NCBI RefSeq assembly: GCF_020745735.1 | Contig: NC_083405.1 | Location: 60,974,345-61,038,344, forward strand | Reading direction: 5' to 3' | DNA from: Hemiscyllium ocellatum | Lineage: Eukaryota | Length of the DNA: 64,000 bases | Shown: positions 2,998-64,000 of the stretch, one piece after another | Layout: every line of letters begins with the position of its first letter | Numbering within the stretch: position 1 is the first letter of the stretch | Notes under the pieces: generated by a model | Told to the model about the DNA's origin: nothing | What the model saw: the letters and a program-made list of their open reading frames with translations, nothing else | Database searches by the model: none | Made by a program: the position numbers and the translations under genes

Positions 2998-3137
2998 CCA
3001 GTCTGTTCGATGTGGGCAACCGGGAACCATTAACTGCAGTAATGTGTGTGATAATCTCCTAACTTGTGGGAAGCATACATGTGCCCAGGTTTGCCATGCA
3101 GGGAAATGCCAGCCATGTCAACTTACTGTTCAGCAAG
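2998..3137 (+). CDS. NFX1: NFX1 exon ([46 protein letters not shown])
   Basis: tttgcag acceptor and gtaagg donor; NF-X1 zinc finger. Confidence 0.95.
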
Positions 3138-30100: not shown

Positions 30101-33100
30101 CGTTCATTGTTGAAGATGTGCTCAAGTGTATTGAGGAAATATTGGAGAAGCTTATGTTCCAATACCTAACAATAAGAAACTCCACGGTTTGGGAGGGGAG
30201 GAGGAAGAAAAAGAAAATTCATTACTTTGCATAAATCACTAATTTAGATAACATGAAACCAACATAATCACCATCTTCAAGGTATGTTAGGCTTGTGGGA
30301 ACACAGAGTTAGGAGCTTGAGTGAATAGTAAATTAAACTATTGTCCAAAACATGATGAATATTTGAAAAGTAACAACTATCTTTGAGGTAATTGAATCGA
30401 AGATGTTGGGGACATTTTAGGTGCTGCTAGATATCAAGCAAGGTGAATGGATGTGTTCAAGTTTTTCCTTCCTCTGAAATTCTTAAACATAGCATATAGT
30501 TTGCTTGTGTTCTCCAAATACCTTTTGTCCCTTTATTTTCTTTTTTGCTAAGTTCTACATTTTTGTAGTTGATTCAGTCCAATCACAATTTAGCTTTAAT
30601 GAACAGATACATGTATTAATGTTCATTCTGTTTAATTCTATTGTTGTGAATTGATGCAAAGATTAGTTCCTGTGATCTGTGAACGTTTTAAGCTGTTGAA
30701 TATGTGACTTGATTCATATGATCAAAACACTTCAGCAAAAAGCTGCCTTTTAATTTGTAAGTAATTTTAATTTATGGACATTGCCATAAAGCACAGATAA
30801 CAAATTATTTTCTATTTTGGATGTGTGCATTCCAGTGCTGGGCAATGTTAACATGTAGAGTTAACAAATAGTCAATAAAAATGTTTAAAGCTTTTAGGAA
30901 TATTCCTGTAGACAACTGATACTTGCCCTTTATTATACATAAATTAGATAGACTTGCACAGTCAAATGCAGAAGGTGCTATGCACTGCTTTGTCCTTGCA
31001 TAAGCTACACACATCACTGTCTAGCTGTTCAGTTAACTGTGTTGAATGGTGTGGCATTGTGCACAATCATCATGACTGTGTTTTTAACTGCCAGTAAGGA
31101 CTGGCAGTTCCATTCTAAACACCCTTTTAGTGGTGGAATAAGCCTTAATTACTGTCAAACAACCTTTTATAATCTTGAGAATTAATTTTCACAGGCTTTG
31201 AGCTTTTACTTATTGGAGACTTTTCCCAATTTTTTGTTTTCAATCTTCCTGTTCCCTATTTCCTAACTCCCTGTCTATTTCTGTTTTAATATAGACTTCT
31301 TTATTTTAACTTCGCTATCTTCGCCATAACTCCAGACAAAATCTGTGACTGATGAGCTGAGCCCTTCAATTTGTGACTAGTAACAGTCTGGCCAACACCA
31401 GATTCCAAAAGACTGGTGACAATGGATTTGTAAGAGAAAGTAATTTTGGTAGTGAGGCAGGGTTTTTAGGACAATGATGAATGATTTGATAGCAGCAGGC
31501 ATACCTAAGTCTATATTTATCCATTTCAAATAGTGGTCACTGAATAGTGGTCAGGATTGAGTATTCAAGCCAATAGTGTTTCCTCATTCCTAGTCCAGGG
31601 ATATTGAGGACAGTTTTATAGGGAGTTTCCTGTTGTCCTGACTGAGAATCGATTCAGCATAATTTGAGGATCAAACCTCAACTATACTTTCAGGGTAAAC
31701 TGAATTGAGTCATCAGGTAACCTGGAAATCGGGCTTTCAGAACCATCTTTTCTGCTTTTCGCAAAACCTGTATTGGTGGATTTATTCCCAATTACATCCA
31801 ACTTTTATTCCTGACACTTTATAGCGTCTGACATTGTAAAGGGTTTCCAGATTTTGAGTGCTGAGTTTGTTCTTTTCAAGGCTGCCATCACCTCTGCTCA
31901 AAAAACAGTTCTTTGCTTTTGTCTTTTCTTGTTTCCTGTTTTCCATTGCCCAGCTCTCACTAACTAATATAGTCTCTGATTTCCTTTCCTCTTAAGTCCT
32001 TGAACATGTGGCCTCCCAGCTCCATAGTTTAAATCTTTTTCAGTGATGTTTCTACTCTGCCATAGAACTGAAATTACCTCTGTCAAGATGCAAATAATAT
32101 CTTACATGACTGTTTCTCTAAATTCTCCCTCTTTTTCACTTTCTCTGCAACCTTTCAGATCAATTGAAGATCAGTTGTCTTTCTTTGGTCCCATTCCTGC
32201 CTAACAAATCATAGCCAGCACATCTCCAGCAATGGATTGTCTTACCATCCCCACAATGTTATCTCTAGATTCTGTCCTGGATTTATTTTTAACATTCCTT
32301 AGTCTCTGAAGGGCAATATTTTTAACATTAAAGACATTGCTTCACGTTTTGCATGTATGCTGATAATCCTCCAGGTCTATCTTTCCACTGCCCCTCAAAC
32401 ACTCGCTACTGGCTTCCATCTTCATTTCATTGTCTTCACTACTTCTGTCTCACTTCATCTGTCAATGGAACTGTAATCTATAGATTTATTATCAAGTCTC
32501 CATTTTTCCTAGGGCTGTCCTAGCCCTCTTCCAAAAACATCAACTCATTAAAACTCTATAACCCCTAGCCATCAGCCTTATCCTACGTCAAGTGTTAACC
32601 TTTGTTTAGTGGTAGTATGCTCACCTCAAGGCCAAGAGTGTAAGTTCGCCTAATTGAAGGACTTTGCAAGTATAGGATAATTTCCAGAAGCTTCCACAAA
32701 AGATCATGTCACAAGTTGCAGTTGTTAGATGAAGGCTAAGTACTGGCCTGGGCATCAGGAGATCTCCTCTGTTACTTTAAGGAAAATGTAATAGGATCTT
32801 TGAGTTCATGTGAGAGGCAGATGGGGGAACTTGGCTTAAAACTGCATCCAGAAGTTAGAATGTTTGACTGTGCAGCATTCCTTTAATAAAACAGTGTCAG
32901 CCTGCATAGTGTGCTGAAGTGATATTTATCTTGAGCCAGCAGGCTTTGTTCACATATGCTGCCATTGAGCTATAGTTCACCCCTAAAAATTGGCCTGGAT
33001 GCTAACCGAACAGTATTGATCCATTAACTTTTGGTTTATATGCATAGCAATGTTGGCTGTTTGCTAACCTGTCTGTCAGAAGTGTTTGAGTTCCTCTTTG

Positions 33101-44374: not shown

Positions 44375-45250
44375 ACTTGACATTTCTGCAATAATACTGA
44401 AAACTTCTGCTCCAGGACTACTCCAACGCTTGCATTTACCCAACAATATGCAAAATTGCCCAAGTATGTCCTGTACAGAAAAAGCAGGATCGATCCAGCC
44501 CAGCCTTTTGATATCCATAAAGTGACATGGATGGTGTCATCAACAGTGCTATCAAGCAGCACTTGCTCCATGATGACTGGTTTGGGTTCTGCCAGGGCCA
44601 CTCAGCTCCTGCCCTTCATTACAGCCTTGGTTCAAACATGGACAAAAATTCTGAATTCTGGGGTGAGTGACTGCCCTTGTCATTAAGGCCACATTTGATT
44701 GAATGAGACATCAAGGAACTGTCATGTGAGCAATTGAGGATTCTAGATCTGTACTAAGATTTTAGAAGAATGGGGGGTGGGTAATTGAATTGAAACTCTC
44801 GGAAGACTGAGAGGCCTGGCTAGAATGGACATGGTGAAGGTTTTTCCACTTATAGGAGAAACTAGAACCTGAAGGCACAGACCAGGAGTGAGGGGACAAC
44901 CCTTTTGATGAGGAATTTTAGACCGTGGTAAATATGTGGAACGTATTGCCGCAGATCGCTGTGGAGGCCAAATCATTGAACGTATTTATTTGATTAAGGT
45001 CACAGGGAGCAGGGAACAGAGAATGGGGTTGAGAAACATTACACGTGATTGAATGGCATAGTAGTCTTAGTGGGCCAAGTGGCAGGAATCGGGTGGGGAA
45101 GGTCTTTGCTGGTTGGAATCATACTAGACATCTAGGAACATCGTTGTGGTTGCTGGAAATCTGTCAGCTCCAGGATGTGTCTGGAGGGGTTCCTCAGTGT
45201 AGTGTCCTAGGCCCAGCCATCTTCAGCTGCTTCATCAGTGACCTTCCCTC
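44375..45250 (+). mobile_element. Mosaic of decayed LINE fragments (a second CR1-like family interrupted by a CR1 3' end)
   Basis: GVPQCSVLGP at ~45185; shares gccagggccactcagctcctg with ~57525. Confidence 0.65.
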
Positions 45251-45714
45251 CATGTTTTTAGGAACAATAAGTCTCTCCAAGGCCCACTGCCTGGAACTGT
45301 TAGTGGCCACCTTGGCCAGGCCGTGGAGCAGAGTCACGAGATAGCCCTTTGACTTGCCTGCCCCTTCCCACACCAAATGCCTGTAGATCAGGAGTGAGGG
45401 GCTGAAGTGTAACCAAAACTTTAGTAGCAGCCCCTTCAAATAAACTAAAAATGTGCTGCAAATGGAAACATTCTACATAGACCTGAAACACTCCAGGTTA
45501 CAAAATCTACACGAGCAATTTATAGTGAATGTGAATCTGGATAAGGGCCTGAATAACATTTATGATAGAGATCATTCATACCTTTTTTGTGGAGCTGAAA
45601 AAGACAGCAAGTTAAAAATTCCCTGCTGATACATAATTTTTTTTCCAAAATGTTTAGATTCATAAAGCCCAGGGTTACAAGAAATTAAAACTTCACAAAG
45701 AGGGTCTACTTAAT

Positions 45715-46005
45715 GAGTTTTGAGAATCCTTGTCCATCCTAGGACAAGCTAAACAGAGACACACACCAGACTTCCTAAAAGCATTGCAGTCCAACCTTCC
45801 TCTACCAACAAACACGTTGACTTGGATCCTGTTTACCACCCCCTGAGACAAAGAAAGGGAAATGATTTCATCACAGGAAATGACATCACCAACCCAAGGA
45901 AACCTAAACACAAATAGAAAGCCATGCCGCCAGCAATGATGTTACCTACTATGGTGATGAAACATCTGAAAATGAACCTTCCAGCTCAGTGAGCAAACCT
46001 ACATA
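45715..46005 (+). mobile_element. Penelope-like 3' end fragment
   Basis: Matches 5560-5780 and 49575-49860. Confidence 0.75.
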
Positions 46006-46572
46006 AAAGAGGGTATACCTGTCAAGAACAATTGAACAAAATCTGGCTGTTTACTGTAGAGAAGAGGAGACCAATGAGAGACCTCATGAGGTGTTTAACA
46101 TCACAAAAAGATTCAACTGTTGGTATAGTAAAATATTTTCACCCACTGCTGAGATCAAAATTAGGGCCAAACTAAAATGTAAACATTAGTAAATTCAATA
46201 GGAATTTGGGAAAAATCATATTTGACTAAAGTGTGGTAAGATTGTAATATATGCACTCACATAAAATAGTTGAGGCAAACAGCACAGAGGAAGAAAATAA
46301 TATAAGGAAATGTTAACAGGATTAGATGAGATGAGATAGGCAGCAGTCAGCCTGAATGACATCTTTATATGGTTTGCAAACACTACAAAGGCCACTAAAT
46401 TTCATGAAGACATGCACACACATCTAATAAAGTTCAAGCCCATACTGGATCAATCATTATTTTCAAACCCTTATGTAAAGTCTATTTCTCTCTTGTCAGG
46501 GAACAAAGGTTCTGACAGATTAACTGTCTTTGGTGGACCATAGCAATGCTTTCACAAAGATTAGTAGATCTT

Positions 46573-46769
46573 CTATCTCCCAGCCTGTCCTTTGCACATG
46601 AGCTTTCCTATAGTATAAAAGGCCATCTCTAATGGTGCGCCTTTGGTATCGCCAAAGTGTACAGCTTGGATAGGCAGTGATGATTTATCACGTAGGATTC
46701 CTTCATCTGTTCTCCAAATGTGGTCATTGCTGTCACAATTGCAGAGCTTTCCTGGGACAGAACAGGATC
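46573..46769 (-). CDS. Terminal coding exon (GSCSVPGKLCNCDSNDHIWRTDEGILRDKSSLPIQAVHFGDTKGAPLEMAFYTIGKLMCKGQAGR*)
   Basis: ttctag acceptor; TAG stop at 46575-46573; paralogous to exon 63459-63644. Confidence 0.92.
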
Positions 46770-49700
46770 CTAGAAGATCAATAAAAGAGGTTGATAACCA
46801 TCAATTCATATAATGCTTTATATATTTTAACTGAAATATCTGGAACAGCTATATCTGAACACAGGTATAACCAGAGTTGAGTTCTTTTGTTGTTGACTTC
46901 ACTCCATAACTTCATCACCCTTTTAGCGTAGTTTTTGGAAGTTTGTTCATCAACGTCTGTCTTAAATATAATTAATTTGCTCAGAACCCAGTCCTTCACT
47001 ATGACTTCAACTTGGCTTCATGCTTCATTATTTTCAATCTCTCCATTCTATCAACTCAGGCATACCATAATATCTTTCTGCTTTACCAACAATAGCAAAG
47101 ATGAAGTTAAAACACTCTGGAATTCTTTCAACTCCCCGGACTTGTGTTTTTCCCTGTCTCCTTACCATTAAAAATTTCTGCTAAATTTACTTCATTGAGA
47201 ACATTTTCATTCATAGAATCTTCGATTCCCTGCAGTGTGCAAGCAGGCCATTCAGCCCATCAAGTCCACACTGACTCTCTGAAGAGCATCCCATCCTATC
47301 CTTGTAACTCTGCATTTACCATGACCAATCCACCTGACCTGCACATCTTTGGATTGTGGGAGGGAAACAGAGCACCCAGAGGAAACCCACACAGACATGG
47401 AGAGAATATGCAATTCAAAATTTGGGAGAAAGTTTGTAACTCGGGTGCTCGTTGTTGTGGTTCTGTTCGCCGAGCTGGGAATTTGTGTTGCAAACATTTT
47501 GTCCCCTGTCTCGGTGACATCCTCAGTGCTTGGGAGCCTCCTGTGAAGTGCTTCTGTGATCTTTCCTCTGAGGATGTCACCGAGACAGGGGACGAAACGT
47601 TTGCAACACACGTTCCCAGCTGGGCGAACAGAACCACAACAACGAGCACCTGAGCTACAAATCTTCTCCCAAAGATTCAAGCCACTACAAATGCCGGAGG
47701 AAATATCACAGAAGCGCTTCACAGGAGGCTCCCAAGCACTGAGGATGTTACCCAGACAGGAGATGAATATTTGCAACACAAATTCCCAGCTCGGCGAACA
47801 GAACTACAAGAACATGCAATCTCCGCACAGTCACCCAAAGCTGGAATCAAACCCAAGTCCCTGCTGCTGTGAGGTGGCAGTGCTAACCACTGACCCACTA
47901 TATTGCCCGTTACTTCTAGTTTACTACACCTTCCTCTGCCATCACACTCACTCACAAACTTTTTCATAAATAAATAGCCTTCTTTTGAGCAGGCCTGTGT
48001 TTCACCGGAAGGGATTTTGTTACATATTTTGGTGTCATGCTGTTTCCAATACATTTTTTGTAACTGCAGGCAAATTGTAAATCAGAACAATTAAGGTCAT
48101 GACTCATCTCAAACTTTGAATAGTCATGTTATCGTTTCATATTTTTAATATATAACATCAAGCCGAATTTAATTTCCCAAAGATCACATAGTAATTCTAT
48201 GTAAACCTGTAGATGAGCAGGCTTTCTACAATGGAGTAATGAGTTTTACAAAGGCATTTACTATTTTAAGATCTTTAACCCAAGTTAGAAGTGATGTTCT
48301 TCAGGAGATAATTTAATTACTGTTCAAAGGTGGAACATTAATATAATAGGTGAATATTTAGAGTAGATGCAGTATGTTATGCTCAAAGTGAAATAGTATT
48401 CTCACTATTTTTCTGAACTATTTCTTGTTGAACTTAATGGAGTAATGGTCATAGCAAGTATGGGAGATTCTGAGGAAGGATCAGTCAACACAAAACATTA
48501 ACTCTGATTTCTCCCCACAGACGCTGCTGGACCTACTGAACTTTTCCAACAATTTCTATTTTTTGTCCCTGCCTTAGATATTAAACCCCTACAGTATGGA
48601 AACAGGCCATTTGGCCCAACAAGTCCACATGAACCCTCTGAAGAGCATCCCTCCCAGACCCATCACCTTAACTGGTAATCCTACATTTCCCATGACTAAT
48701 GCACATAGCTGACACTTCCCTGTACACATTATGGGCAATTTAACACAGCCAATTCACCTAACCAGCACATCTTTGGACCGTGGGAGGAAACCCACGCAAA
48801 CACAGAGTAACACCACACAGATAGTGGTCTAAGGCTAGAATTGAACCTGGAACTCTGACACTGTGAGACAGCAGTACTAAACCACTCAACCACCATGCCA
48901 TGCCACTTTAACTGAGTAAAGTGTTTTATTAGGTATAGATTGGTTCATCTTTAATTTGTAACAAATTAATCAAGTTATTGCAACATTTATATCACATGAG
49001 TCTGAATAAAACAGGTTTTAAACTTCATTTATTAAATCTAAATTAGTGAAATTATGATCATCAAAAATATTCTGCTCCCCGTACTGAACCAGTAAAAATG
49101 GTAACATTTTAACCTACCTTCATAAAGATGTTACACACCATTTTAAAACTTACAGTGGGTTTTATTTTTAATCCTGAAAATCAATAATCCATAGTCCAGA
49201 ACACAGCCCTAATTAAAGCTGATGGTTTGGAGTTTCTCAAATACCTGTCATTCCACAAGCACAGCGACCACTCTCTGGACTCGCACCTCCCCAGTAGAAC
49301 ATTCTTCTTCCATCCCAGGATGTCCACCAGCCCCAGGCTGCTTGAATGAAGCGAATATGGCGACAGTCCAGCTATGGACACAATAGCACATTCTGAACAG
49401 GAGCAACATAAAATCATAAAGCACTTATTCCTGCAACCCTACTCAGGTTTATTTTTACTGAATTATATGCTCTTTTGAGAAGTTTTTGATGCATTTAGAA
49501 CAGCTAGAGATTCTACCATGCTGTCTCACCAATTATCCCAGAAGACCCCTCTGATACACACACATTATTATCAGGTTGTAAGTTTGGTCACTGAGCTGGT
49601 AGGTTTGTTGTCAGATGTTTCATCACCATGCTCGGTAACATTATCAGTGAGCCTCCGGTGAAGCAGTGGTGTTCTTTCCCACTTGCTATTTATGTGTCTT

Positions 49701-52700
49701 AGTCTATTGTGGTGGATAGTATCATTTCTGGTTCTGTTTCTGAGAGGTTGGTAAATGGGGTCGAAATCAATGTGTTTGTTAATGGAGTTCGGGCTTGAAT
49801 GCCAGGCCTGTAGGAATTCCCATGCATGTTTTTGTTTAGTCAGTCCCAGGATGGATGTATTGTCCCAGTCGAACTGGTGTCCCTCTTTGTTTGTGTGTGT
49901 GGATACCAGTGATAGTTGGTCATGTTTTTTGGTGGTTAGTTGGTGCTCATGTATCCTGGTGGCTAGTTCCCTGCCTGTCTGTCCAATGTAATGTTTGTTG
50001 CAGCCCTTGCAGGGTATTTTGTATATAATGTTTGTTCTGCTGGTTGTGGGTACGGGGACCTTTAAATTAATCAGTGGTTGCTTTAGTGTAGTGGTCGGTT
50101 TGTGGGCTACCATGATGCCTTGGGGCCGAAGCAGTCTGGTGGTCATTTCTGAAATGTTTTTGATGTATGGTAGGGTAACTAGAGTCTCCGGGTGTGTTGT
50201 GTCTTGCTAGGCAAAAGTGAGGACTGCAGATGCTGGAAATTAGAGTCAAGGTCAGAGTGATGCTCAGAGAGCCAAAAGGAATACAGGGAGAATGCTGGTA
50301 AGTGGAGTTGAAATGCCCATCAGCCATGATTGAATGGTGGAGTTGACTCGATGGGCTGAATGGCCTTACTTCCACTCCTATTGTCTTATGGTCTTATGGA
50401 AAGGCACAGCAGGTCAGGCAGCATCCAGAGAAGGAAAATCGACGTTTCGGGCACGAGTCTTCATCAGGAATCAGAAAAAGTGTTGTGTCTTCCTGTTTAG
50501 ATCTGTTGTGGGGCCTTGTTTATTCAGCTCTATAATCTGTCAGTGAGTTCAGTTTTATTTAACCACAAAGGGATTTATTTTGGGAGGAGACAGGAAATGG
50601 AGAGTTTATTTCCATCATGTTGGATTGTACGTGTGCTACACAGTATCTTCATTTATTTAATGAATTCAAATAATAAAGCCTTTTTTTTTAATTTCACAAA
50701 AACAAAGGTGGTCAGAGGCAAGGCACTAACAGGTTGAATGAAAGGGAAAACTGGAAAGCTGAATGAATGGACGATCAGTCACTGTGGGTCCACGGTGCTA
50801 TTGGAAATTATCAGGACAGGCCAACAATGGAATTAACCCTCAAATAGACTTAGATTTTGGACTGAAGTAACAATAAGCATAGGGTTTAGAAAAAAATTGC
50901 AATGTATAGGAGATGAAAGAACATAAATTTTGCAAAACTGTTGAGAAAGCTTAAAAATCTGCACTGATAATAAACTGTGTTCTTTATGAATTTTCCAGTG
51001 CTCTGACCTTGACATACTGCTCACAGGATTCAGAAATGCTTGTGAGAGCATTCAGCTGATTCAGCTCTGCTTCATATTTTATCTCTTTTGTGTAGCAGCC
51101 AGGATCCTCACAGGGAGCTACTCTTGTGCGTCTTTCACTGTCATGGCTCACGATGGTTATACCTGCATCAGACACATGGCAGTCAGTGTTTTTTTTTAAA
51201 ACTCTTATGTAAACACCTTGTTATAATTTGTGGCCAATATTTTCTTCTTAGTTGCTGTTGAATTTGTGGCAAATTAATATGTTTTGGTGTTAAAGCATAA
51301 TTCATATTTTCTTCTGAATCCCATTGTTTTATTATCATGCGATGAAGCAGAATAAATTTGCAATTGATTTAGCAACTTCAACCCCAGTTAACTGCCATTA
51401 TGAGAAGGGATGCAACAAGACATTCTTTGTAATTTCAGCATGACAATTATTTTTCTAATTATTGAAATAGAATGTGCATAATGTGGTATAAATTATTAGA
51501 TGGAAACATTGCTTCATTTATCAGGATACCCTTCTGGTGAGTTTCATCATTTTTATCACGAGGGCTGTGAATTAAAATCCTGCTCACAATGCCATCTTTT
51601 GGAATGAGATGGGTATGAAAGGGTTAACACAGTTTTGTTCTGGTACTTGACAAGTTATCAGTTGAATGTTAATACAGCTTCGATCATTCAATTTAACTGC
51701 TGCATTTGTGTATCACAATGCTGCCTGTGTAGCATTCTACTAATCACCACATCATTCAGACTGGTCGTAAAATCAGAGATGGGAAATTGTGGATTGAATT
51801 TAGATTGAGATGATTTTGGACCAGTTCAATATCCTAGAAATTTGCCAAGTTTTGATTGTAAAACTTGCAAAATTTGGACCAGTTGGGCCTATAAACTAAT
51901 GTCCCTTTAGTTAATGATTCTGGACAGTAGTTTATCTGATTCTGCTATTCAGCGGGTTACCAATAAACTGAATGGCAACTGAGGACAGCAGCAGCCTTCC
52001 TGCCCTGCTACACTCTCCACAACAACCCACCTTTGACGGTCCCTATCCCCACCACCACTCATCATCATAAGTGGGATTTTAATTGGAAGTCACCTACAGA
52101 TGTATATGACATGAGTAGAGCCCAAAATGTCAGTTTAAAACCCTGAAGAAATTCCAACATTCCCGAAAAATTTCAAGCACATTCTGCCTTTGGAATACAT
52201 CTCTAAAAAGTTAACCTAAAGTTAGAATAAATGTGCTCTTAACAATGCCTGTAAAATTCTGATTCAATTATCTTAATCGAAACATGTTAAAATTTGTGTT
52301 TACTTTAAAGTTTACCATGGAGATTCCATCATTTAGCTGATATCGTTCTCTGACAATGTGACTGTGAAGGATAAACAGGATGTGTGCAAATAGGCAGGTG
52401 GAACTGGTTTCGTATGGAATTAGGGCCGGCACAGATTGGTTAGGCCACAGGGTCTGTTTCCATGCAGTATGACTCAATGAATGGCTGCGACTACGTTGTG
52501 TCTTAAATGTATTTCTGTGGTTTTGAATTTATTCATTCATGAGTCTTTCAATTACTTTAATAACAGCTCATTTGATTTTCGGCTTTTGTTCAGATCAAGA
52601 ATAACTAGCGACAGTCACTTGTCATTTTGACAGAATCTAATTACCTGTTGATTGGTCAGAGGCCAAATCACAGAAAACTTCAAATGGTGCAACTCCCCTT

Positions 52701-55700
52701 CCAGCACCATCTGGGTCAATGACATAACGACGTGATTCCTGGAACCCTGCCTTTTTCAGTGCAGTACAGGACTCCAGCACCGAAACCTGGGAACCTATAA
52801 ACCACAGGTAAATCACACAGCCAGTGTTAAATTGACTGCATGTAGAAAATATACATGGATAGCATCACCTCAAGGACAAAGGACTTGCCACATATGGTTT
52901 GCACTTTCACTCTGGTTTGTATGACTTTCAGCAATAACAATTCAACAACAACTTGATTTTTTTTAAATTAAAAGAAAGTCTCAAGTTATTTCACAAATAG
53001 GGTTGAAAGAGATAGATGTCAAACACAGGAGGAAGAGATTAGGGACTGAGGTAGGTTAGTGGGGAATTTGCATTTGTTCTGGGAGGTGGGTTTTAAGAAA
53101 TTTCTTGCTAAGGAGGAACTTGTAGCAATTATAACCTCAACATCTGAGGGAGGGCTCTGTGACGAATGTTGTAGTGAAAGAGTGTGGGGGGATATTCCAA
53201 AAGTCCCAAGTAAAAGGGATAGAGGGAAGGAAATAGGTCTGAAAGAGATTATGGGATCGAATTAGGAAAAGCAAAAGGAAATTTTGCCAAGTACTTTCCA
53301 ATCCTTTTATTAATTATTTAAACCTCCATTTCTGTATATTCATCAGTGCCGTGTAAAGTAGATCAAATCTTTTTTCAGCCTCCTGTTCTATGATTGAGAT
53401 TGTGTTAGCTTACTGTTGTGAATTGGTGCCCTGCTAAATCTTCAATGCCTATAAGGTTAAAATTAAGCATTTTCCACTGGAATCTCCACACCATCAGAAT
53501 TCATGCTTAATCCTAGCTACGGATTCAGAGCCCTTCACTGCACAGTCTCCAATGCTTAGTTATCCTTCATATAATTGATTGATTATACATTGTCTCCCAC
53601 ATGGGACTGAGCCAATGCATTATACAAACTCTATCACTGAGACATATATATACTACTGGTTTAGTTATACATCCCAAGATCCTACTTAACTCTATTCACT
53701 GCTGCTTTACAATGTTTTGTGGGCTTCAGCAATTTATCTACCAATGTCTGCAAATCCTTTTCTTGCATTTTTACTGTAAAATAAGACCTTGTGGTGCCAC
53801 TGCTTATTAACTTCACAGCTAAAAAGATTGACGTCATTTCAGTGAAACTAGTCCTCGCTGAACAGTTTTCTCCTTCCCAAGGAATGGTCCGAATGTATCG
53901 TGGTTCCACACGCACCATCCTTTAAGCCTCACAATCTTTTTTTGTCTCTCCCACCCAGCTCAGAGTGTGGCACTTCTAGCAATTCTAAGATTACTACCTT
54001 GGGAATCTAAGGGCTATTCCTTTCTCTTTGAAACTGAATTTCAAAGGCTTGAGCCTGCTCTTTCATAATTACTTCCTATGTTAACCAACGCCTGTGGCTA
54101 TTTTCACAATCCTTTAAGAAATGTTTCTCTACCTACTTATTAAATCTTGAGGCAAAGTACCATAGGGAACTCCTGACATGAATGCAAAAGAAAAATTAGC
54201 TATCTCTCAATTAATAGGATCTGTATAATGATGACCTTCCTATTTTTTTCTACTTCATTAACAATGTGTTTTTCTCTCAATATGCCCTGATGTCTGCTTC
54301 ATAGCTATTCAGTATCTGGCAATAGCATTGAAAGTTTGGGAATGCCAAAGTTTTGAACTCTGTTTCTTCAGCTGTGACCTATTTAGTTAATTTTTCAATC
54401 TGTGGAATAGTGGTAACATGGAATGTGTGGAATTTAACTCTGCACTTTGGAAGTTGTACCCCTGATTATAAATGTCAGTACACACCTGCCCCCGTCCTGG
54501 TGATTTTCCTACAAACACTTTTGACTGACTGGTCCTTAACTGAATCAAGGCAGGTCTCTCAGTACCTTCTGGGAAGGAAGTCCCTCCTCTGAGATCTAAT
54601 GAACAATCAAATGGCTGGCAGATCCCACCAGTGCCACCATGAGTGATGGTCACTACTGCATCCAATTCCCAATATGATCATTCTTGGAGCCAGTAACCAA
54701 GGTAACTGGAGGGGCTTCGTGAGGGCCAGACTATGGCTGGAGATAGGGTCTAGTATGGGAAACTGCGGTAGATAAGTCACAGAAGGAGGGAAAGATCTTG
54801 AGGAGATTGGCCTCCAAGAGATTTCACTCACCTCCAAAACAGTACTGAAAGGGCCAGACAGCAGACTTGATGCCAGCCTCTGCCTGCTGTGCATAACACT
54901 GCAGCAGGAATAGGGGAGGGTAGGTAGGTGCCAAGAAACATGCCCATAGTATTGAGTCCAATTTTTTTAAAACCACAACCACTGCCAACCTGCTCCGGGG
55001 AGAGTATAAAATTCAAGCTCAAAAGTTGCACTTTGCAGACATCAACTCGTCATTAAAATGTCGGTAACACAATTCTCTGATAATTCCGACAAATGTAACG
55101 TTCACCATGCACAGGATTACATGTGCTGTTCTCATTAGTCAATTATTTCCAAATGATGAATCCATCTTTTATATGCAATAGTTGACTCACCAATCATTAC
55201 TAGTCTTGATCAAGCTTTCCCAGAGTAGTACGACTAAAGAAACAATGAGGAAAAAGAACATGCTTGTATTTTAGACTAGATTAAATTCCCTACAGTGTGG
55301 AGACAGGCCCTTGTTGTCACAAAAGTACCAAAGAGATAGTAAAGGCAATTAAGCCCAAGCCTGGCTTCCAGAAGTTAGAAACAATTTAAGGAATTGACCT
55401 GGGAACAGACAGTCTCCCTCTAACTTTAGTCCCAGAATTATACTTCAAAAAAAATTAAATTACAGTAATCACAGATGTTATTCTGTAATGTTTATTGTGA
55501 GCAAAGGAAGGCAATTCAGAATTAATAATTTCTTCAAATAGAAGTGATCTTTGTTTAAAATCTCCTTTTAGTAAGGTCATTGTAATACCATGTATTATGA
55601 AAGGATGAAATGTTTTCCTTGGCTAAAGATGTTTCCAATTTGTAACTAATCAGGCAACTTACCTAAACATCTGCAGTTCATAAAATCTGTCACTAAATCT

Positions 55701-58700
55701 ACAAAAAGTATTGAACAGGTCATGCAAGTGGGAGTAAAACAATGTTTGTTTCAATTGCACCCAAGATGGTTTTTTTAACTATGGAAAGCTAAGTGACAGC
55801 TGGATTTCTTGTACTGCAAGAAATCTGTCAGGAAGCCTCCTGCTTTGTAACGGGCTGCTATCAAATCAGAGGCACCACCATCTACAAGGTTTACACAATA
55901 TTAAAACTAACATATAATCTTAGCACTTTATGCATAAATCATTTCAACTTTTTTTGAGTTTTCAAAACATTCAAACATCGTAACTGTATTCCCCTCACAC
56001 TGCATTTTTACAACTAAGATGTAAGGGCTGCTCGCAATGAAGCTGCTCACACGCCCGATGTAAGTGCAGCTGGAGTGCTGGGGATTGGTGGAAAGTTGGG
56101 CAAGAACAAGGTACCAAGATCTCTCCACAGACGCATCTTGGAGAACATTCACTGAGAGGCCAGCACAATCCTTTTGCCTATTGATATTCCCATAGGTTGA
56201 ATCTCCAATCTACCCGAGAATTTCAGCCCAGGAAAGAAATCAACTTCCAGGTCTTTGCTAAAATAGATGTAAACATGTGGCCTATAGGAACATCTAGGGT
56301 AAAGTCATTGTCTGATCCAATTTTTATTTATGGTCAGCACTTTGATTCTTGCGCATTACAAGCAGGGATTTCAACTTTTATAGGGGACCCGCCATTGGTC
56401 TACTGAATGTTAATTTATGTATCTAATGTTGTGTATCATCCAAATCCATGCCTCACCCCAATGAGATCTTGGGACCAGCACATGCTGTTGAAGGTATATG
56501 AAGTTGAAATGGTGGAGGTAGTTCAAGGGAAACTAACCAATTTTCTGGCCTCTGCATTGGAATACCACCAACCCCTGGCAATGCCAGAAAATGGTAAAGA
56601 TACACACAGCCCCTTTGTAGCCCCTATGTCAAGCTGCATCCCTCTACCCACAACCTCCCATCTTGGAGCTTTATGATTTCAATGCCAACTTATGTCAATC
56701 CATGTTCCCCTCACCATTTGCCCTTACAACAATCAGTTCATCCAATCCTAAAATCTACCATGGACAGACCTCAAAATCCTGTTGGATGCAGAGTGCAGGA
56801 GGACATGGCAGGAGCAGCATCAGGCATACGGAAAAAGGGGGTATCATCCTGGTGAAATTACCAAACAGGATGACTTGCACTCCAAACAGCACAAGCAGCA
56901 AATGGTAGAGCTAACTGAGTTCAAAACCAAAGAGTCAGGTTAGTGCTCTGCAGTGCTGCCACATCCAGATGAGAATAATTGTGGAGAATTAAACAACGCA
57001 TTGTAGGAGGGGGCTCCACAAATACTTCCATCTCAATGATGGAAGAGTTCAACACACCAGTATAAAAGAGAAGGCTGAAGCATTTGCGGCAATCTTCAGC
57101 CAGAACGGCCAAGTAGGTGATCCATCTTGGTCTCTTCTAGTGATTCCCCAGCATCACATACCAAGTTCAGCCAACTGATTCACTCCACATGATACCAAGA
57201 AACAGTTGGAGGCACTGTATACTGAAATGGCTATGGGCCCCTGACAACATTCTGGCAATAGTACTGGAATATCTGTGCTCCAGAACTTGACGCACCCCTG
57301 GCTAATCTGTTCCAGTACAGTTACAACACTGACATTTACCCGACAATGTGGAAAACTGGCCAGGTATGTCCTGTATACAAAATGAAAACAAATCCAACCC
57401 GGCCAATTATCGCCCGATCAGTCTGCTCTCGATCATGAGAAAAGTGATGGAAGGTCTCATCAACAGTGCATCAAGCAGCAGCTGCTCAGCAATAACCTGC
57501 TCAGTGACGCCCAGTTTGGATTCCACCAGGGCCACTCAGCTCCTGACTAACATTTATGCTACTCAGGTGCCAGGCAATAACCATAAGAGGAGATAATCTA
57601 GCCATCATCCCCTAACATTTGATCACCTTACCATGGCTAAATTCACCATAATCAAAATCCCATGGGTTATCATTGAACAGAAACTCTATTGGAGGCAGTT
57701 CAGAGAAGGTTCACTGGATTAATTCCAAAGATTATAGAGATTGAGCAGTTTAAGCCTGTACCAGATAGAATATTGAAGCAGGAGAGGAAATTTAATTTAA
57801 GTATCTAAAACGCTAATCAGGGACATAGAGTCATAGAGATATACAGCACGGAAACAGATCCAACTCATCCATGCTGACCAGATATCCCAACCCAATCTAA
57901 TCCCACCTGCCAGCACCCGGCTCATATCCCTCCAAACCCTTCCTATTCACATACCCATCCAAATGCCTCTTAAATGTTGCAATTTGTACCAGCCTCCACC
58001 ACATCTTCTGGCAGCTTATTCCATACCACCCAATGCGTGAAAGAGTTGCCCCTTAGGTCTCTTTTATATCTTTCCCCTCTCACTGTAAACCTATACCCTC
58101 TAGTTCTGGACATTCCCACTCCAGGCAAAAGACTTTGCCTATTTATCCTATCCATGCCCCTCATGATTTTATAAAGCTCTATAAGGTCACCCCTCAGCCT
58201 CCGATGCTCCAGGGAAAACAGCCCTAGCCTATTCAACCTCTCCCCATAGCTCAAATCCGCTAACATCCTTGGCAACATCCTTGCAAATCTTTTCTGAACC
58301 CTTTCACGTTTCACAACATCCTTCCGATAGGAAGGGGAGCAGAGTTGCATGCAATATTCCAAAGTGTTTAGATTAGAGTGGTGCTGGAAAAGCACAGCAG
58401 GTCAGGCAGCATCCGAGAAGCAGGAAAATCGATGTTTCGGGCAAAATCCCTTCAACAAAGCCCTGATGAAGGGATTTTGCCCGAAACATTGATTTTCCTG
58501 CTCCTCGGATGCTGCCAGATCTGCTGTGCTTTTCCAGCACTACTCTAATCTGAACTCTGGCTTCCAGCATCTGCAGCCCACACTTTTGTCTATATTCCAA
58601 AAATGGCCCAACCAATGTCCTGTACAGATGCAACATGACCTTCCAACTCCTATACTCAATACTCTGACCAATAAAAGAAAGCATACCAAACGCCTTCTTC

Positions 58701-61700
58701 ACTATACTATCTACCTGCAATTCTACTTTCAAGGAGCTATGAACCTGCACTCCAAGGTCTTTTTGTTCAGCAACATTCCCCAGGACCTTACCGTTAAGTG
58801 TATAAGTCCTGCTAACATTTGCTTTCCCAAAATGCAGCACCTTGCATTTATCTGAATTAAACTCCATCTGCCACTTCTCAGCCCACGGACCCAACTGTTT
58901 AAGATCCCATTGTAATCTTGAGGTAACCTTCTTCGCTGTCCACTATACCTCCAATTTTGGTGTCATCTCCAAAAATACTAACTACACCTCATGCTCACAT
59001 CCAAATCATTCATATAAATGATGAAAAGTAGTGGACCCAGCACCGAGCTATGTGGTACTCCACTGGTCACAGGCTTCCACCTGAAAAACAACCCTCCTAC
59101 ACCACCCTCTGTCTTCTACCTTTGAGCCAGTTTAATATTCAAATGGCTAGTTCTCCTGTATTCTGTGAGATCTAAGCTTGCTAACCAGTCTCCCGGGGAA
59201 CCTTGTCGAACGCTTTACTGAAGTCAATATTGATCATGTCTACTGCTCTGCCTTCATCAATCCACTTCGTTACTACTTCAAAAAACTCATTCAAGTTTGT
59301 GAGACATAATTTCCCACGCACAAAGCCACGTTGATTATTCCAAATCAGTCCTTGCCTTTCCAAATACATATACATCCTGTCTCATGAAGATTGGTGGAGT
59401 TGTCGATAGTGAGGAGGCTGTTGTCAACTGCAAAAGGACTTAGATATGATGCAGAGTGGGCTGAGGAGTGGCAGATGGAATTCAACCCTGTCAAATGTGA
59501 GGTTGTCCATTTTGGAAAGACAAATAAGAATGCGGAATACAGGGTTAACGGTAGGGTTCTTAGTAAGGTGGAGGAACAGAGGGATCTTGGGGTCTATGTT
59601 CATAGATCTTTGAAAGTTGCCACTCAGGTGGATAGAGCTTGTAAGAAGGCCTATGGTGTATTAGCGTTCATTAGCAGAGGGACTGAATTCAAGAGTCGTG
59701 AGGTGATGTTGCAGCTGTACAGGACCTTGGTAAGGCCACATTTGGAGTACTGTGTGCAGTTCTGGTCGCCTCACTTTAGGAAAGATGTGGAAGCTTTGGA
59801 CAGGGTGCAGAGGAGATTTACCAGGATGTTGCCTGGAATGGAGAATAGGTCGTACGAGGAGAGGTTGAGAGTGCTAGGCCTTTTCTCATTGGAACGGCGA
59901 AGGATGAGGGGTGACTCGATAGAGGTTTAGAAGATGATCAGAGGAATAGATAGAGTAGGCAGTCAGAGAATTTTCCCCAGGTACAACAGAGTGTTACAAG
60001 GGGACATAAATTTAAGGTGAAGGGTGGAAGGTATGGGGGGATATCAGGGGTAGGTTCTTTACCCAAAGAGTGGTGGGGGCATGGAATACGCTGCCTGTGG
60101 GAGTGGCAGAGTCAGAATCATTGGTGAAAATGTGTTGCTGGTTAAAGCACAGCAGGTCAGGCAGCATCAAAGGAACAGGAAATTCGATGTTTCGGGCATA
60201 AGCCCTTCATCAGGAATGAGGAGAGTGTGCCAGGCAGGCCAAGCTAAAAGGTAGGGAGGAGGGACTTGGGGGAGGGGTGATGGAGATGTGATAGGTGGAA
60301 GGAGGTCAAGGTGAGGGTGATAGGCTGGAGTGGGGTGGGGGCGGAGAGGTCAGGAAGAAGATTGCAGGTTAGGAGGGCGGTGCTGAGTTCGAGGGAATCG
60401 ACTGAGACAAGGTGGGGGGAGGGGAAATGAGGAAACTGGAGATATCTGAGTTCAATTGGTGACCTTAAGCAGCAGTTGGATAGGTACATGGATTGGTGCT
60501 TAAGCTAGGACAAATGTTTGGCACAACATTGTGGGCCGAAGGGCCTGTTCTGTGTTCTATGTTCTATTTCCTCCAACAACTTGCCCACCACCGACATCAG
60601 GCTCACTGGTCTATAATTCCCTGGCTTGTCCTTATCACCTTTCCTAAATAGTTGCACCACGTTAGCCAACTTCCAGTCTTCCGGCACCTCACTTGTGACT
60701 AGTGATGATATAAATATCTCAGCAAGGAGCCCAGCAATCACTTCTCTACCTTCCCACAGAGTTCTAGTGTATACCTGATCATGTCCTGGTGATTTTTATG
60801 CGTTTCAAGACATCCAGCACTTTCTCCTCTGTAATATAGGCATTTTTCAAGATGTCATCATCTATTTCCCTACATTCTATATCTTCCATGTCCTGTTCCA
60901 CAGTAAACACTGATGCAAAATACTCGTTTAGTATCTTCCCCATCTCTTCTGGCTCCACACAAAGACGGCTTTGCAGATCTTTAAGGAACTCTTTATCTCT
61001 CAAGTTACCCTTTTGTCCTTAATGTATTTGCTATCTCATGTCCCCTTTTTGCCCTCCTGATTTCCCTCTTAATTATACTCCTACTGCCTTTATACTCTTC
61101 TAAGGATTCACTCAATCTATCTTGTACATATGCTTCCTTCTTTTCCTTAAACAAGCCCTCAATTTCTTCAGTCATCCAGCATTCCCTATACCTACCAGCC
61201 TTTCTTTTCACCCTAACAGGAATATACTGTCTCTGGATTCTCGTTATCTCATTTCTGAAGGCTTCCCATTTTCCAGCCATCCCTTTACCTGCGAACATCT
61301 GCCCCCAATCAGCTTTTGAAAGTTCCTGCCTAATACCATCAAAATTAGCCTTCTTCCAATTTAGAACTTCAACTTTTAGATCTGGTCTCTCCTTTTCCAC
61401 CATTATTTTGAAACTAATAGAATTATAGCCTCTGGCTCCAAAGTGCTCCCCCACTGACACCTCAGTTACCTGCCCTGCTTTATTTCCCAAGAGTACGTCA
61501 AGTTTTCTCTAGTAGGTACATCCACATACTGAACCAGAAAAGTATCTTGTACACACTTAACAAATTCCTCTCCATCTAAACCCTTAACACTCTGGCAATC
61601 CCAGTCTATGTTTGGAAAGTTAAAATCCCCTACCCTATTATTCTTACAGATAACTGAGATCTCCTTACCAATCTTGAAAAAAATAGATACAAATTAGGTG

Positions 61701-63644
61701 TTTCTGCCTGTGGGGCAATCTCGAACAAGAGGTCATAGTTTTAGACTACATGGTTGGGGGGCGGGGGTGAAGGGGGTACAGATTTAAAACAGAAATGAAG
61801 AGGAATCACTTCTCTTGAAGGTCCTGAGTCACTACCCCAGGTTGTGGTGAACAATAGGACAGTGAATAAATTCATGTAGGAGATAGGGAGATTTTAAAAT
61901 TAGTAGTGGGTTGAAAGGTTATGGGAAGCAGACAAAGATATGGAGTTAAGGCTGAGATGAGATCAACCATGATTGTATTAAGTGATGGAGCAGGTTTGAG
62001 GGGGTGAATAGCCTACTCATGTTCCTAGTTCTTGTGTTCTTATAGAAATACTGTGGCTATAAGAGCAGGCCAGAAACTAGGAATTCTGTGGCGAGCAAAC
62101 TGTATCCACAATGTGGTCAACAATAGACAAATTATTTCCCCAATGCTGCCCTCCATCGACAAGATACAACTTTGGAGTATAATGGAGTACTCTCCACTTG
62201 CCTGGATGGGTAGAGTTTAAATAAATGGTAAATACATGGAATAAGCTGCCAGGTGAAGTGGCTTGGGTGGGTACAATTAAAACATATAAAAGGCATTAGG
62301 ACAGGTGCATGGATAGGAAAGGTATAAGAGGGATATGGACCAAAAGCAGGCAAATGTCAGCATGGATGAGCCTGCTTTTGTGCTCTATGACTCTATTGCA
62401 CTCAAAAAGCTTGACGCCATCCAAGACAAAATATCCCACTTGATTGGCATCCTATCCACCATTTTCAAATTCATATCAACACTCAGTAGCAGCAGCATGT
62501 ACAATTTACAAGATGCACAGCAGAAATTCATCAAGGTTTCTTATAAAGCACCTTCCAAACCCACGACCATTTCCATTCAGAAGGACAAATGCAGTAGATA
62601 CATAGGAACATCATCACCTGAAACATCCTCGCCAAGCCTCTCATCATCTTGTCTTGGATGTTCCTTCACTGTTACTGGGTCAAAGTCCTGAAACTCTATC
62701 CCTGAGGGCATTGTGGGTTAACCCACAATACGTGGACTGCAGCAGTTTAGGAAGTAGCTTACCATTAGCTTCTCCAGAGCAGTTAGAGATGGGCAGTAAA
62801 TACTGACCAAAGCAGTGATGCTGTTATCCCATGAATGCACGAGAAAACATTCTCCAACCCAGCCATGCCCAATAAAATTGGAAAGTGCCATGCCTGCAGA
62901 AAAACTTGTGACTTTACTTTCTTGTGAAATGAGGGATTCCCAATTGAATGTGTCAGAAGAGTTTCTGAAAGGTTTTCCTCAACTTCAATGATGCACGAGC
63001 AAAGCTGTTAATGTTGACATTTTTCACCCATACTATACAGTCAAGAATTGGCCAATTATCAAACTCTTTGAGTTTTGACTAAGTGCAAAGCGACAGAGAG
63101 TTGAAATTCTGTTTCTTTAGCTTCTCCTGGCTATATCCCAGTATACTAATTCATTTTACAGTGACCTGCCTAGGGAGACTGGAATTTCTCAGATCCTAAG
63201 GCAACCTGTGGGATTCAAACTGAAGTTGCATTCTTGATTTGATGTTACAGTATTTTTTAACAGGATTTTATGGTCACAGAAATCCTGTTCAGTTGGTTAT
63301 CAATACCTGTGCTATTCTGTTACCTCCATTTCCTCTACTAATCAGATACTGATCTGGTTGTATTGTTTTGCAATCCAGTTGAATTTTAAACTGCTTCATC
63401 ATTCTTTAAGCATTAGTTACGAATTGAGATTCCCATTTGCTTTCAGGCATTCTCTTACTCTGTCCATAACAATGAAATGGGCCGATTTTGTGAAAAGCCA
63501 TCTCGACAGGTGCATCTCTTGTATCTCCAAATCTCACTTCACGTACAGGAAGAATGGCTTTGTCTGTCAAATATCCTTTGTCTTGTCTCCAAACTCCATC
63601 ATTTGCATCACAGTTGCATGTGGAAAGACCCAGGGCACAGTTGC
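46573..63644 (-). CDS. Unnamed gene, 3' part (5 exons, 815 nt): tandem Caspr/neurexin-IV-type fibrinogen-like domain protein; 5' end lies beyond the window
   Basis: Exons 63644-63459, 52794-52645, 51162-51008, 49371-49245 and 46769-46573 splice GT-AG in frame. Motifs SC...YVIDPDG...FEVFCD...TIVSHD...CEQY...WW...YWGG...CACG...CNCD...W..D.G.L.DK..LP....FGDT....IG...C.G match the Caspr fibrinogen-like domain. Confidence 0.9.
47415..47808. mobile_element. Penelope pseudo-LTR cluster (one inverted copy, two direct copies)
   Basis: 12-bp TSD with one mismatch: agaatatgcaat at 47403-47414 and agaacatgcaat at 47809-47820. Confidence 0.88.
47568..47604 (+). ncRNA. Minimal type-I hammerhead ribozyme motif (Penelope-associated)
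   Basis: CUGAGGA-U-[GUCACC gagaca GGGGAC]-GAAA-C-GUU; core intact, 5' strand of stem I lost at the inversion junction. Confidence 0.6.
48585..48905 (-). mobile_element. HE1-like SINE, diverged
   Basis: Matches 5876-6186. Confidence 0.85.
49245..49371 (-). CDS. Exon (LDCRHIRFIQAAWGWWTSWDGRRMFYWGGASPESGRCACGMT)
   Basis: ccatag acceptor and gtattt donor; different frame from track ORF 49181-49417. Confidence 0.92.
49575..50208 (-). mobile_element. Penelope-like element 3' part with GIY-YIG endonuclease
   Basis: ORF 49571-50146 contains NIIYKIPCKGCNKHYIGQTGRELATRIHEH. Confidence 0.93.
50209..50473. mobile_element. Penelope-derived terminal repeat interrupted by a CR1 3' tail (about 50265-50397)
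   Basis: Starts aggcaaaagtgaggactgcagatgctgg as at 35441; the insert matches 23135-23247. Confidence 0.8.
51008..51162 (-). CDS. Exon (GITIVSHDSERRTRVAPCEDPGCYTKEIKYEAELNQLNALTSISESCEQYVK)
   Basis: atgcag acceptor and gtcaga donor; within ORF 50984-51175. Confidence 0.92.
52645..52794 (-). CDS. Exon (SSQVSVLESCTALKKAGFQESRRYVIDPDGAGRGVAPFEVFCDLASDQST)
   Basis: tttatag acceptor and gtaatt donor; YxIDPDG motif; not in the ORF track. Confidence 0.92.
56600..57690 (+). mobile_element. Decayed LINE (CR1-like second family) ORF2 fragment
   Basis: KSNPANYRPISLLSIMRKVMEG in ORF 57348-57596. Confidence 0.85.
58364..58591. mobile_element. Short palindromic Penelope-derived insertion
   Basis: About 89-bp inverted arms (58366-58454 and 58467-58555); perfect 10-bp TSD ATATTCCAAA at 58354-58363 and 58592-58601. 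Confidence 0.92.
60128..60454 (-). mobile_element. Penelope-derived 3' fragment nested in the + strand CR1
   Basis: 8-bp TSD ATTGGTGA at 60120-60127 and 60455-60462; similar to 12235-12500. Confidence 0.88.
60182..60217 (-). ncRNA. Minimal type-I hammerhead ribozyme motif (Penelope-associated)
   Basis: AUUC-CUGAUGA-A-GGGC-uuau-GCCC-GAAA-C-AUC-GAAU; stems I and II pair perfectly; GUC appears changed to AUC by CpG decay. Confidence 0.65.
61680..62035 (+). mobile_element. Decayed CR1 3' end
   Basis: acaagaggtcatagttttaga...gaatagcctactc. Confidence 0.65.
62045..62838 (+). mobile_element. Decayed LINE 3' region (second CR1-like family) with a nested CR1 tail at about 62215-62396
   Basis: MEYSPLAWM and LKKLDAIQDK flank an insert ending ctctatgactctat. 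Confidence 0.7.
63459..63644 (-). CDS. Exon: C-terminal part of the penultimate fibrinogen-like repeat (GNCALGLSTCNCDANDGVWRQDKGYLTDKAILPVREVRFGDTRDAPVEMAFHKIGPFHCYGQ)
   Basis: ttttttttcacag acceptor and gtaaga donor; phase 1/1; within ORF 63406-63696. Confidence 0.92.
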
Positions 63645-63799: not shown

Positions 63800-64000
63800 A
63801 TTAACCATTCGGATGCTCACCAACCAGAAGAGTAAATGTAATACAATCCAGTTGATGTGTTGTTTCTAGCTTTTACATGGCTTGAAACAGCTTCAAATGA
63901 TTATATTTCTTTCAACTGCTGGGGCTTGAAAGCTATTCCAGTTAGATTCCAGCATATCTTTTTCAATCAGAACTCTTATTTCTGACTGTGGACATTTCCA

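Follow-up and report, generated by a model that had tools for sequence, protein, structure and literature searches.

The question raised by this locus is what kind of gene ends in two Caspr-type 'fibrinogen-like' domains and then stops. Five exons on the minus strand of a 64,000-nucleotide stretch of the Hemiscyllium ocellatum genome (NC_083405.1, positions 60,974,345 to 61,038,344; hereafter the window) encode the end of such a product, and an initial annotation, made from the letters of the sequence, had read them as an unnamed gene built from tandem copies of the domain. It is considered close to certain that an intact, conserved and unnamed vertebrate gene has its 3' end in these five exons, and that its product runs in the order signal peptide, Link module, long linker, CUB, SRCR, two Caspr-type domains and stop, with a length of about 1,500 amino acids in bamboo sharks. 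The first and second C-terminal Caspr-type domains are here named FBG1 and FBG2. When this identity and architecture are blended with a function as a hyaluronan-binding scaffold, the whole is regarded as probable; the function by itself is put forward tentatively, at slightly less than an even chance. The elements found within the window are as follows.

Positions 63644 to 63459, minus strand: last (fourth) exon of FBG1, 186 nucleotides, with an acceptor ending in tttcacag and a donor starting with gtaaga, encoding NCALGLSTCNCD...HCYGQ and the first base of a split codon.
Positions 52794 to 52645, minus strand: FBG2 exon 1, 150 nucleotides, encoding subdomain A with IDPDG, between AG and GT borders.
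Positions 51162 to 51008, minus strand: FBG2 exon 2, 155 nucleotides, encoding GITIVSHD...CEQYVK, between AG and GT borders (tblastn E 8e-30).
Positions 49371 to 49245, minus strand: FBG2 exon 3, 127 nucleotides, encoding LDCRHIRF...YWGG...CACGMTG, with the donor ACAG/GTATTT.
Positions 46769 to 46573, minus strand: terminal coding exon of FBG2, 197 nucleotides, encoding SCSVPGKLCNCD...FGDT...KGQAGR, with the stop codon TAG at 46573-46575.
Positions 44985 to 46572, minus strand: probable 3' untranslated region, up to the AATAAA at 44985-44990, its extent beyond 45600 being deduced.

On reading of the sequence, each acceptor in this set consists of a polypyrimidine tract followed by AG and the donors are GT, the introns between the five exons are in phases 1, 1, 0 and 1, and the exons join in one frame into 270 amino acids that end in ...KLMCKGQAGR before the stop. 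The minus-strand GT-AG exons, their common frame and the product of about 270 residues, as proposed in the initial annotation, were thus recovered, and the five-exon reading is far beyond chance. The first 61 residues are the tail of FBG1 and the other ~206 form a complete FBG2, the two tails sharing 50% identity, in agreement with the earlier description of the end of one domain fused to a complete second copy of about 205 residues and closed by AGR-stop. The Caspr motifs that had been claimed (IDPDG, VSHD, CEQY, YWGG, CACG, CNCD and FGDT) are all encoded by the minus-strand exons. No third copy of the domain was found by tblastn in the 46.5 kb downstream of the terminal exon. Pfam scans of the single exons found almost nothing, FBG2 exon 1 alone giving weak matches to Fibrinogen_C (E 0.002) and to COLFI, the fibrillar procollagen C-propeptide family (E 0.14).

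The identity of the gene follows from database searches with the spliced product, which is 100% identical over its full length to the C-terminus of XP_060681449.1 (LOC132816051, H. ocellatum). This entry was reached through the 90% cluster of a Chiloscyllium punctatum 'uncharacterized protein isoform X3', which was the best match, with 98.5% identity to the spliced product. When 1.8 billion representative proteins were searched by phmmer with the last exon, proteins of 1,200-1,800 amino acids came out on top, each with two matched stretches, the better of which was the extreme C-terminus. The window was found exactly in GCA_020745735.1 CM036663.1, from which the genomic locus of XP_060681449.1 was taken (L001, in which position 32162 corresponds to window position 64000), and mapping of the 1,526-amino-acid C. 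punctatum isoform X1 onto this locus delineated the whole gene in H. ocellatum, with the following exons.

L001:1803-1889: signal-peptide exon.
L001:9179-11791: large exon with the Link module and the long linker.
L001:12639-12866 and 14489-14641: two exons of the CUB domain.
L001:14749-14928 and 18396-18533: two exons of the SRCR domain.
L001:19563-19700, 26108-26269, 30387-30533 and 32517-32714: four exons of FBG1, the last being the counterpart of window 63459-63644, with a 100% match to XP_060681449.1.
L001:43382-43519, 44999-45157, 46791-46934 and 49386-49586: four exons of FBG2.

The gene therefore starts about 30 kb past the edge of the window, which covers the last fifth of the protein, namely the last exon of FBG1, the four FBG2 exons, the stop and the 3' untranslated region. 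The large exon is an intact open frame of 871 codons in H. ocellatum, and the exon boundaries of FBG1 and FBG2 correspond throughout their four plus four exons. Extension past position 64000 gave two domain copies in total and a signal-peptide exon upstream. The claim that the gene is built from tandem copies consequently stands as far as the pair is concerned, but not as a description of the whole, since exactly two copies end a Link-linker-CUB-SRCR mosaic. In Chiloscyllium plagiosum the gene is split over two models (LOC122549850 and LOC122550246). Transcription was approached through the share of sampled sequence words present in conspecific sequencing runs, two of which were guessed by the tool to be RNA. 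The interval 45600-46769, comprising the last exon and about 1 kb past the stop, had 0.90 and 0.50 of its words in two RNA-labelled runs, and the interval 46400-52400, of which 11% is exon or untranslated region, had 0.14 and 0.12 in the same two runs and 0.76-0.87 in DNA runs. A spliced mRNA whose 3' untranslated region is long should give just this combination of a high share in exon and untranslated region and a low share in the mostly intronic 6 kb, and a single AATAAA lies within 3 kb of the stop.

Pfam scans of the orthologues, which took in seven proteins including a lamprey model, gave one N-terminal Xlink, one CUB and one SRCR, all far over their cut-offs, and a weak Fibrinogen_C; no discoidin (F5_F8_type_C), Laminin_G or EGF family was found in the seven, whereas the CNTNAP proteins among the matches of the protein search described below do carry discoidin, LamG and EGF families. 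In a Kyte-Doolittle scan of eight orthologues no hydrophobic 19-mer exceeded 1.6 outside the signal peptide. All eight stop 2-12 residues past the last FBG2 cysteine with short hydrophilic C-termini, which bears out the earlier claim that the protein ends without LamG domains or a membrane anchor. Because the signal peptide is the only hydrophobic segment and the chain ends so soon after the last cysteine, the product is predicted from its sequence to be secreted, with neither a transmembrane helix nor a tail of the glycosylphosphatidylinositol type. The linker spans about 750-760 amino acids in bamboo sharks (C. punctatum), with 13% Ser, 10% Thr, 15 N-glycosylation sequons and one Cys, and the protein is probably heavily glycosylated. 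The linker is shorter in some orthologues, and a 194-residue stretch of it makes the difference between the C. punctatum isoforms. The Link module scores 98-103 bits in Pfam Xlink against a cut-off of 27, and its best single-domain match in the PDB is the TSG-6 Link module (82 bits), with one aggrecan Link domain at 53 bits and CD44 at 47. In the 21 orthologues compared, which range from lamprey to frogs, every sequence that covers them has the four Link cysteines, and the same holds for the positions matching TSG-6 K11 (Arg throughout), Y12, Y59 and Y78. In TSG-6, these four residues and F70 are hyaluronan contacts.

Orthologues were sought with the region from CUB to the end of the protein against 5.8 billion proteins. 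The full architecture was found in sharks (Carcharodon, Cetorhinus, Scyliorhinus, Stegostoma and Heterodontus), in a skate and a chimaera, in sturgeon, paddlefish, bichir, gar and bowfin, in the elopomorph teleosts Anguilla, Albula and Aldrovandia, and in salamanders and many frogs, with full-length models of 1,223-1,797 amino acids; cluster look-ups added coelacanth fragments and a lamprey protein. Each species has one slowly evolving orthologue, with no lineage-specific expansion, and FBG2 identity is 61-85% among gnathostome orthologues and 65% to the lamprey copy. The lamprey (Lampetra planeri) model has the Link module, a long linker, CUB and one FBG2-type domain but lacks both SRCR and FBG1, which may be either a real difference or the result of exons skipped by the model. 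No orthologue from amniotes or non-elopomorph teleosts was found in this search, which did reach mammalian CNTNAP1 and DMBT1 at about 31-37% identity, and no second dedicated search was made; gene loss in amniotes is accordingly a well-supported lead. The apparent absence from amniotes, including mouse and human, and from most teleosts, including zebrafish, would explain why the gene was missed. Nearly all source names are 'uncharacterized', the other labels including 'versican core protein-like', 'Tumor necrosis factor-inducible gene 6 protein' and 'threonine-rich GPI-anchored glycoprotein', and fragments carry 'neurexin-4-like', 'NRX4 protein' and 'contactin-associated protein 1-like', the kind of Caspr-like mislabelling that had been foreseen. 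The open-access literature searched yielded no paper on a Link-CUB-SRCR-double-Caspr architecture, so that the earlier statement that no named vertebrate gene is known to have such an architecture agrees with what was found among proteins and in that literature. The locus is already annotated as uncharacterised; what is new is the recognition of a conserved vertebrate family with a new architecture.

Of 229 proteins collected, 222 were found by a hidden Markov model of both domains to contain the domain type; among them are invertebrate secreted mosaics with up to 7-8 tandem Caspr-type copies. The notion that the domain belongs to Caspr only, as a single copy, therefore had to be abandoned. 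Two trees, a quick one of 77 domains and a careful one of 63, concur in placing FBG1 of all gnathostomes in one clade (support 99/99) and FBG2 with the coelacanth fragment and the lamprey domain in another (98/90), the two being joined in a clade of their own (94/90). CNTNAP1, CNTNAP2 and CNTNAP5 group with insect and starfish neurexin IV (100/97), and both FBG1 and FBG2 lie outside this clade, so that the gene is neither a Caspr orthologue nor a recent Caspr derivative. Branching inside each FBG clade reproduces the species groups, with the lamprey domain as sister to gnathostome FBG2. FBG1 and FBG2 are an ancient duplicate pair of one four-exon module, and, provided that the root falls outside the pair, the duplication is older than the lamprey-gnathostome split, lamprey having lost FBG1 or its model having missed it. 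The proposal of the initial annotation that the gene is no orthologue of Caspr and encodes a distinct, probably secreted protein, to be checked by a tree with CNTNAP, neurexin IV and invertebrate homologues, is thus upheld by the tree, by the signal peptide and by the lack of LamG, EGF, discoidin and transmembrane segments.

An AlphaFold2 model of FBG2, built on a 136-sequence alignment, reached a pLDDT of 96.5 and a pTM of 0.91, and against the AlphaFold models of Swiss-Prot its top 24 matches were 'fibrinogen-like' domains with TM-scores of 0.79-0.91, belonging to Caspr/CNTNAP, neurexin IV, axotactin, nlr-1 and a coral LamG protein; collagen C-propeptides came next, at 0.56-0.58. Superposition on the domains of CNTNAP1, CNTNAP2 and Nrx-IV gave TM-scores of 0.88-0.91 and root-mean-square deviations of 1.6-2.1 Å at 30-39% identity. 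No solved structure of a Caspr-type domain was found by sequence or fold search, and PDB sequence searches with the terminal exon or the whole domain pair had no match. Among solved structures the C-propeptides of procollagens I and III ranked first, with Foldseek E-values of about 1e-8 to 1e-6; VIA-align against 5K31, 4AE2 and 6FZW placed 179 of 206 residues on chain residues 35-245, at Z 14-15.6 and 16-19% identity. True fibrinogen-related domains (FReDs), by comparison, gave Z 6.9 or less and TM-scores of about 0.3. Matches of the family profile to FReDs and to COLFI are confined to the first ~55 residues, and Pfam PF00147 was matched at profile positions 3-47 of 221, not at full length. 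In the C-propeptide, residues 8-29 form a trimeric coiled-coil stalk and residues 30-76 a Ca2+-binding base, the rest being the petal (PMC5353611). Since the alignment starts at residue 35, the Caspr-type domain would correspond to base and petal with no stalk, and the near-invariant IDPDG is aligned with the C-propeptide base. On these models, the 'fibrinogen-like' domain of Caspr is structurally a stalk-less collagen C-propeptide; no paper in the open-access literature searched names both COLFI and contactin-associated proteins. A model of the FBG1-FBG2 tandem had a pLDDT of 92.8 and a pTM of 0.54, so that the pair is predicted to be two well-folded beads whose mutual orientation is not fixed. 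A fixed pseudo-oligomer resembling COLFI protomers was considered and found no support at this pTM.

On the basis of these domains, it is proposed that the Link module at one end would bind hyaluronan or a related glycosaminoglycan, that the long glycosylated spacer would hold it apart from the C-terminal cluster, and that CUB, SRCR, FBG1 and FBG2 at the other end would serve protein-protein contacts. The protein would then be, by analogy with TSG-6 or the lecticans, an extracellular cross-linker or scaffold rather than an adhesion receptor in the manner of Caspr. The nearest named neighbours in feature space are TSG-6 clusters, with DMBT1-like and SRCR-fibrinogen (FGL1L) clusters also near. 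Several points weigh against this account. The full architecture in H. ocellatum rests on the mapped C. punctatum protein, the NCBI model being N-terminally short: XP_060681449.1 takes as its start a Met inside the large exon and omits the signal peptide and the Link module, though the genome encodes both intact. Support for expression consists of word shares in runs guessed to be RNA, together with NCBI gene models. The Ser/Thr richness of the linker is moderate, so that 'mucin-like' may be too strong a term, and the equivalent of TSG-6 F70 is variable across the 21 orthologues. Finally, the CUB domain is not specifically TSG-6-like, with 76 bits to cubilin and 67 to TSG-6, PCPE-1 also scoring above TSG-6 and neuropilin being no more distant. 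Descent as a simple TSG-6 paralogue, with which the Link module agrees but the CUB domain does not, was set aside and stays a lead.

The rival that survives best, though it is judged unlikely, is a soluble innate-immune agglutinin or pattern-recognition protein at mucosal surfaces, comparable to DMBT1 or the ficolins, in which SRCR, CUB and both 'fibrinogen-like' domains would attach to the surfaces of microbes, with the glycosylated linker as a mucin-like spacer. The combination of SRCR with CUB and the nearness of the DMBT1-like and FGL1L clusters speak for it, as does a hemichordate DMBT1-like relative that joins eight SRCR stretches to two Caspr-type domains. Moreover, the family occurs in aquatic and amphibious vertebrates with no amniote match in the search described above, a pattern known for some mucosal defence genes. 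However, the FBG domains share only their first ~55 residues with true FReDs, which reach Z 6.9 or less where COLFI reaches 15, and since the FReD fold beyond subdomain A is not superposable on the model, neither the lectin-type ligand and Ca2+ pocket of the P subdomain nor a ficolin-type acetyl-group pocket is expected. A ficolin-like lectin function of FBG1 and FBG2 was rejected on these grounds. The earlier description of the pair as Caspr-type fibrinogen-like domains is therefore retained, whereas its suggestion of a lectin-like protein, given as one example, is weakened, the fold being nearer to COLFI. In addition, a single slow orthologue per species is unlike typical immune lectin families, which expand, and the strong conservation of the Link module suggests that its ligand is a glycosaminoglycan of endogenous origin.

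A further-reaching version of the hyaluronan-scaffold proposal, which is regarded as rather improbable, would see here an ancient hyaladherin family that arose in the vertebrate stem, no later than the lamprey-gnathostome split, and was lost in amniotes and most teleosts. Its FBG domains, and the 'fibrinogen-like' domains of all Caspr/neurexin-IV proteins with them, would be stalk-less COLFI homologues acting as Ca2+-dependent protein-assembly modules, to which CUB domains might bind much as PCPE-1 does to the procollagen C-propeptide. If this were true, function would be reassigned for a domain that is mutated in CNTNAP2 disorders.

Very little credence is given to the idea that the protein continues beyond the stop at 46573, with a non-canonical donor after ...KGQ leading to LamG, transmembrane or other exons of a membrane receptor. 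FBG1 does splice exactly after the equivalent ...YGQ codon, an ancestral splice site of the module, but the last exon reads CAG/GCTGGG at this place, where GT is missing, as fits a terminal exon, and orthologues from lamprey to frogs end 2-12 residues on. One RNA-labelled run holds 0.90 of the words of the exon and the ~1 kb beyond the stop. Downstream there is no exon of Caspr type, and about 3.7 kb on comes a convergent gene of NF-X1 type on the other strand. Hardly any probability remains for a decaying partial CNTNAP duplicate, that is, a pseudogene fragment, which would account for the domain type common with CNTNAP and the 30-39% identity, but not for an intact frame with all splice sites, for FBG2 identities of 61-85% in gnathostomes and 65% to lamprey, for the position of both domains outside the Caspr clade or for exons joined to conserved Link, CUB and SRCR exons; both this and the reading past the stop are effectively excluded.

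The surroundings and introns of the gene hold other elements. The convergent neighbour is an NF-X1-type zinc-finger/R3H gene on the plus strand (window ~2951-42833), whose 3' end is separated by about 3.7 kb from the FBG2 stop codon. Its Cys/His-rich exons are at 2951-3199, 9865-10389, 13761-13886, 18750-18914, 19807-19974 and 24691-25035; Pfam zf-NF-X1 matches two of these, and the annotated product has 1,154 amino acids with an R3H domain. Within the studied gene, the intron between FBG2 exons 3 and 4 contains overlapping long open reading frames on both strands (47144-47779) that share repeated peptide motifs (...GARCCGSVR.AGN.CCK.FVPCLGDIL...), and looks like the site of a repeat element, inverted or tandem. 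On the minus strand at 49571-50146, in the intron that separates FBG2 exons 2 and 3, lies a 191-codon open reading frame with ...IYKIPCKGCNKHYIGQTGRELATRIHEH..., by eye like a Penelope-like GIY-YIG endonuclease and blank in Pfam. The 10.6-kb intron between the last FBG1 exon and FBG2 exon 1 holds, at 57970-61490 on both strands, several open reading frames of 140-180 amino acids in opposite orientations, also blank in Pfam, with reverse-transcriptase-tail motifs (...LEYC.QFWSP..RKD...L..VQ.RFTRM...) that suggest nested insertions of the long interspersed nuclear element (LINE) type.

The findings bear on several fields. A new architecture joins the small set of vertebrate Link-module proteins, which comprises TSG-6, CD44, LYVE-1, the stabilins, the lecticans and the HAPLNs. 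The Caspr-type domain is seen to occur outside Caspr, in a simpler soluble context for its study, and the finding that its closest solved fold is not that of fibrinogen but that of the procollagen C-propeptide may be relevant to the reading of CNTNAP variants. For annotation, neurexin-4-like, CNTNAP-like and versican-like are wrong names for fragments of this gene.

In comparison with known systems, Caspr (CNTNAP1-5) and neurexin IV share with the studied protein the domain type, its cysteine pattern and the motifs IDPDG, CEQ, YWGG, CACG, CNCD and GDT, whereas their discoidin, LamG and EGF domains, transmembrane helix and cytoplasmic tail are absent here. Two copies stand against the one of Caspr, and Caspr is a membrane adhesion receptor, unlike the studied product, which is predicted to be secreted. 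The invertebrate arrays (Glandiceps 'DMBT1-like', Ptychodera, Liolophura and the cnidarian Ig/EGF/C-lectin mosaics) likewise use the domain outside Caspr, often in tandem and at the C-terminus, and the hemichordate Glandiceps protein also joins it with SRCR. However, these proteins lack the Link-linker-CUB-SRCR context, and their domains fall outside the vertebrate FBG1 plus FBG2 clade. FReDs, as found in ficolins, angiopoietins, FGL1 and the tenascin Fg domain, are homologous over the first ~55 residues (subdomain A; profile E about 1e-5), but their full A-B-P fold is absent from the FBG2 model. COLFI (5K31, 4AE2) is the best solved match for the whole domain; the profile sees its N-terminal C...IDP..G...V.C stretch, and its Pfam model matches invertebrate members of the Caspr-type family. 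On the other side, the COLFI stalk has no counterpart here, no collagen repeat precedes the domain, PF01410 stays below threshold (E 0.14, for one exon), and trimerisation of the COLFI kind is not predicted for the FBG domains. TSG-6 (TNFAIP6), after which some databases name orthologues of the studied gene, has the same N-terminal Link module followed further on by a single CUB domain, and four of its five hyaluronan-contact residues are kept. Unlike TSG-6 with its 277 amino acids, the studied protein reaches 1,223-1,797 and adds a long linker between Link and CUB, an SRCR domain and two Caspr-type domains.

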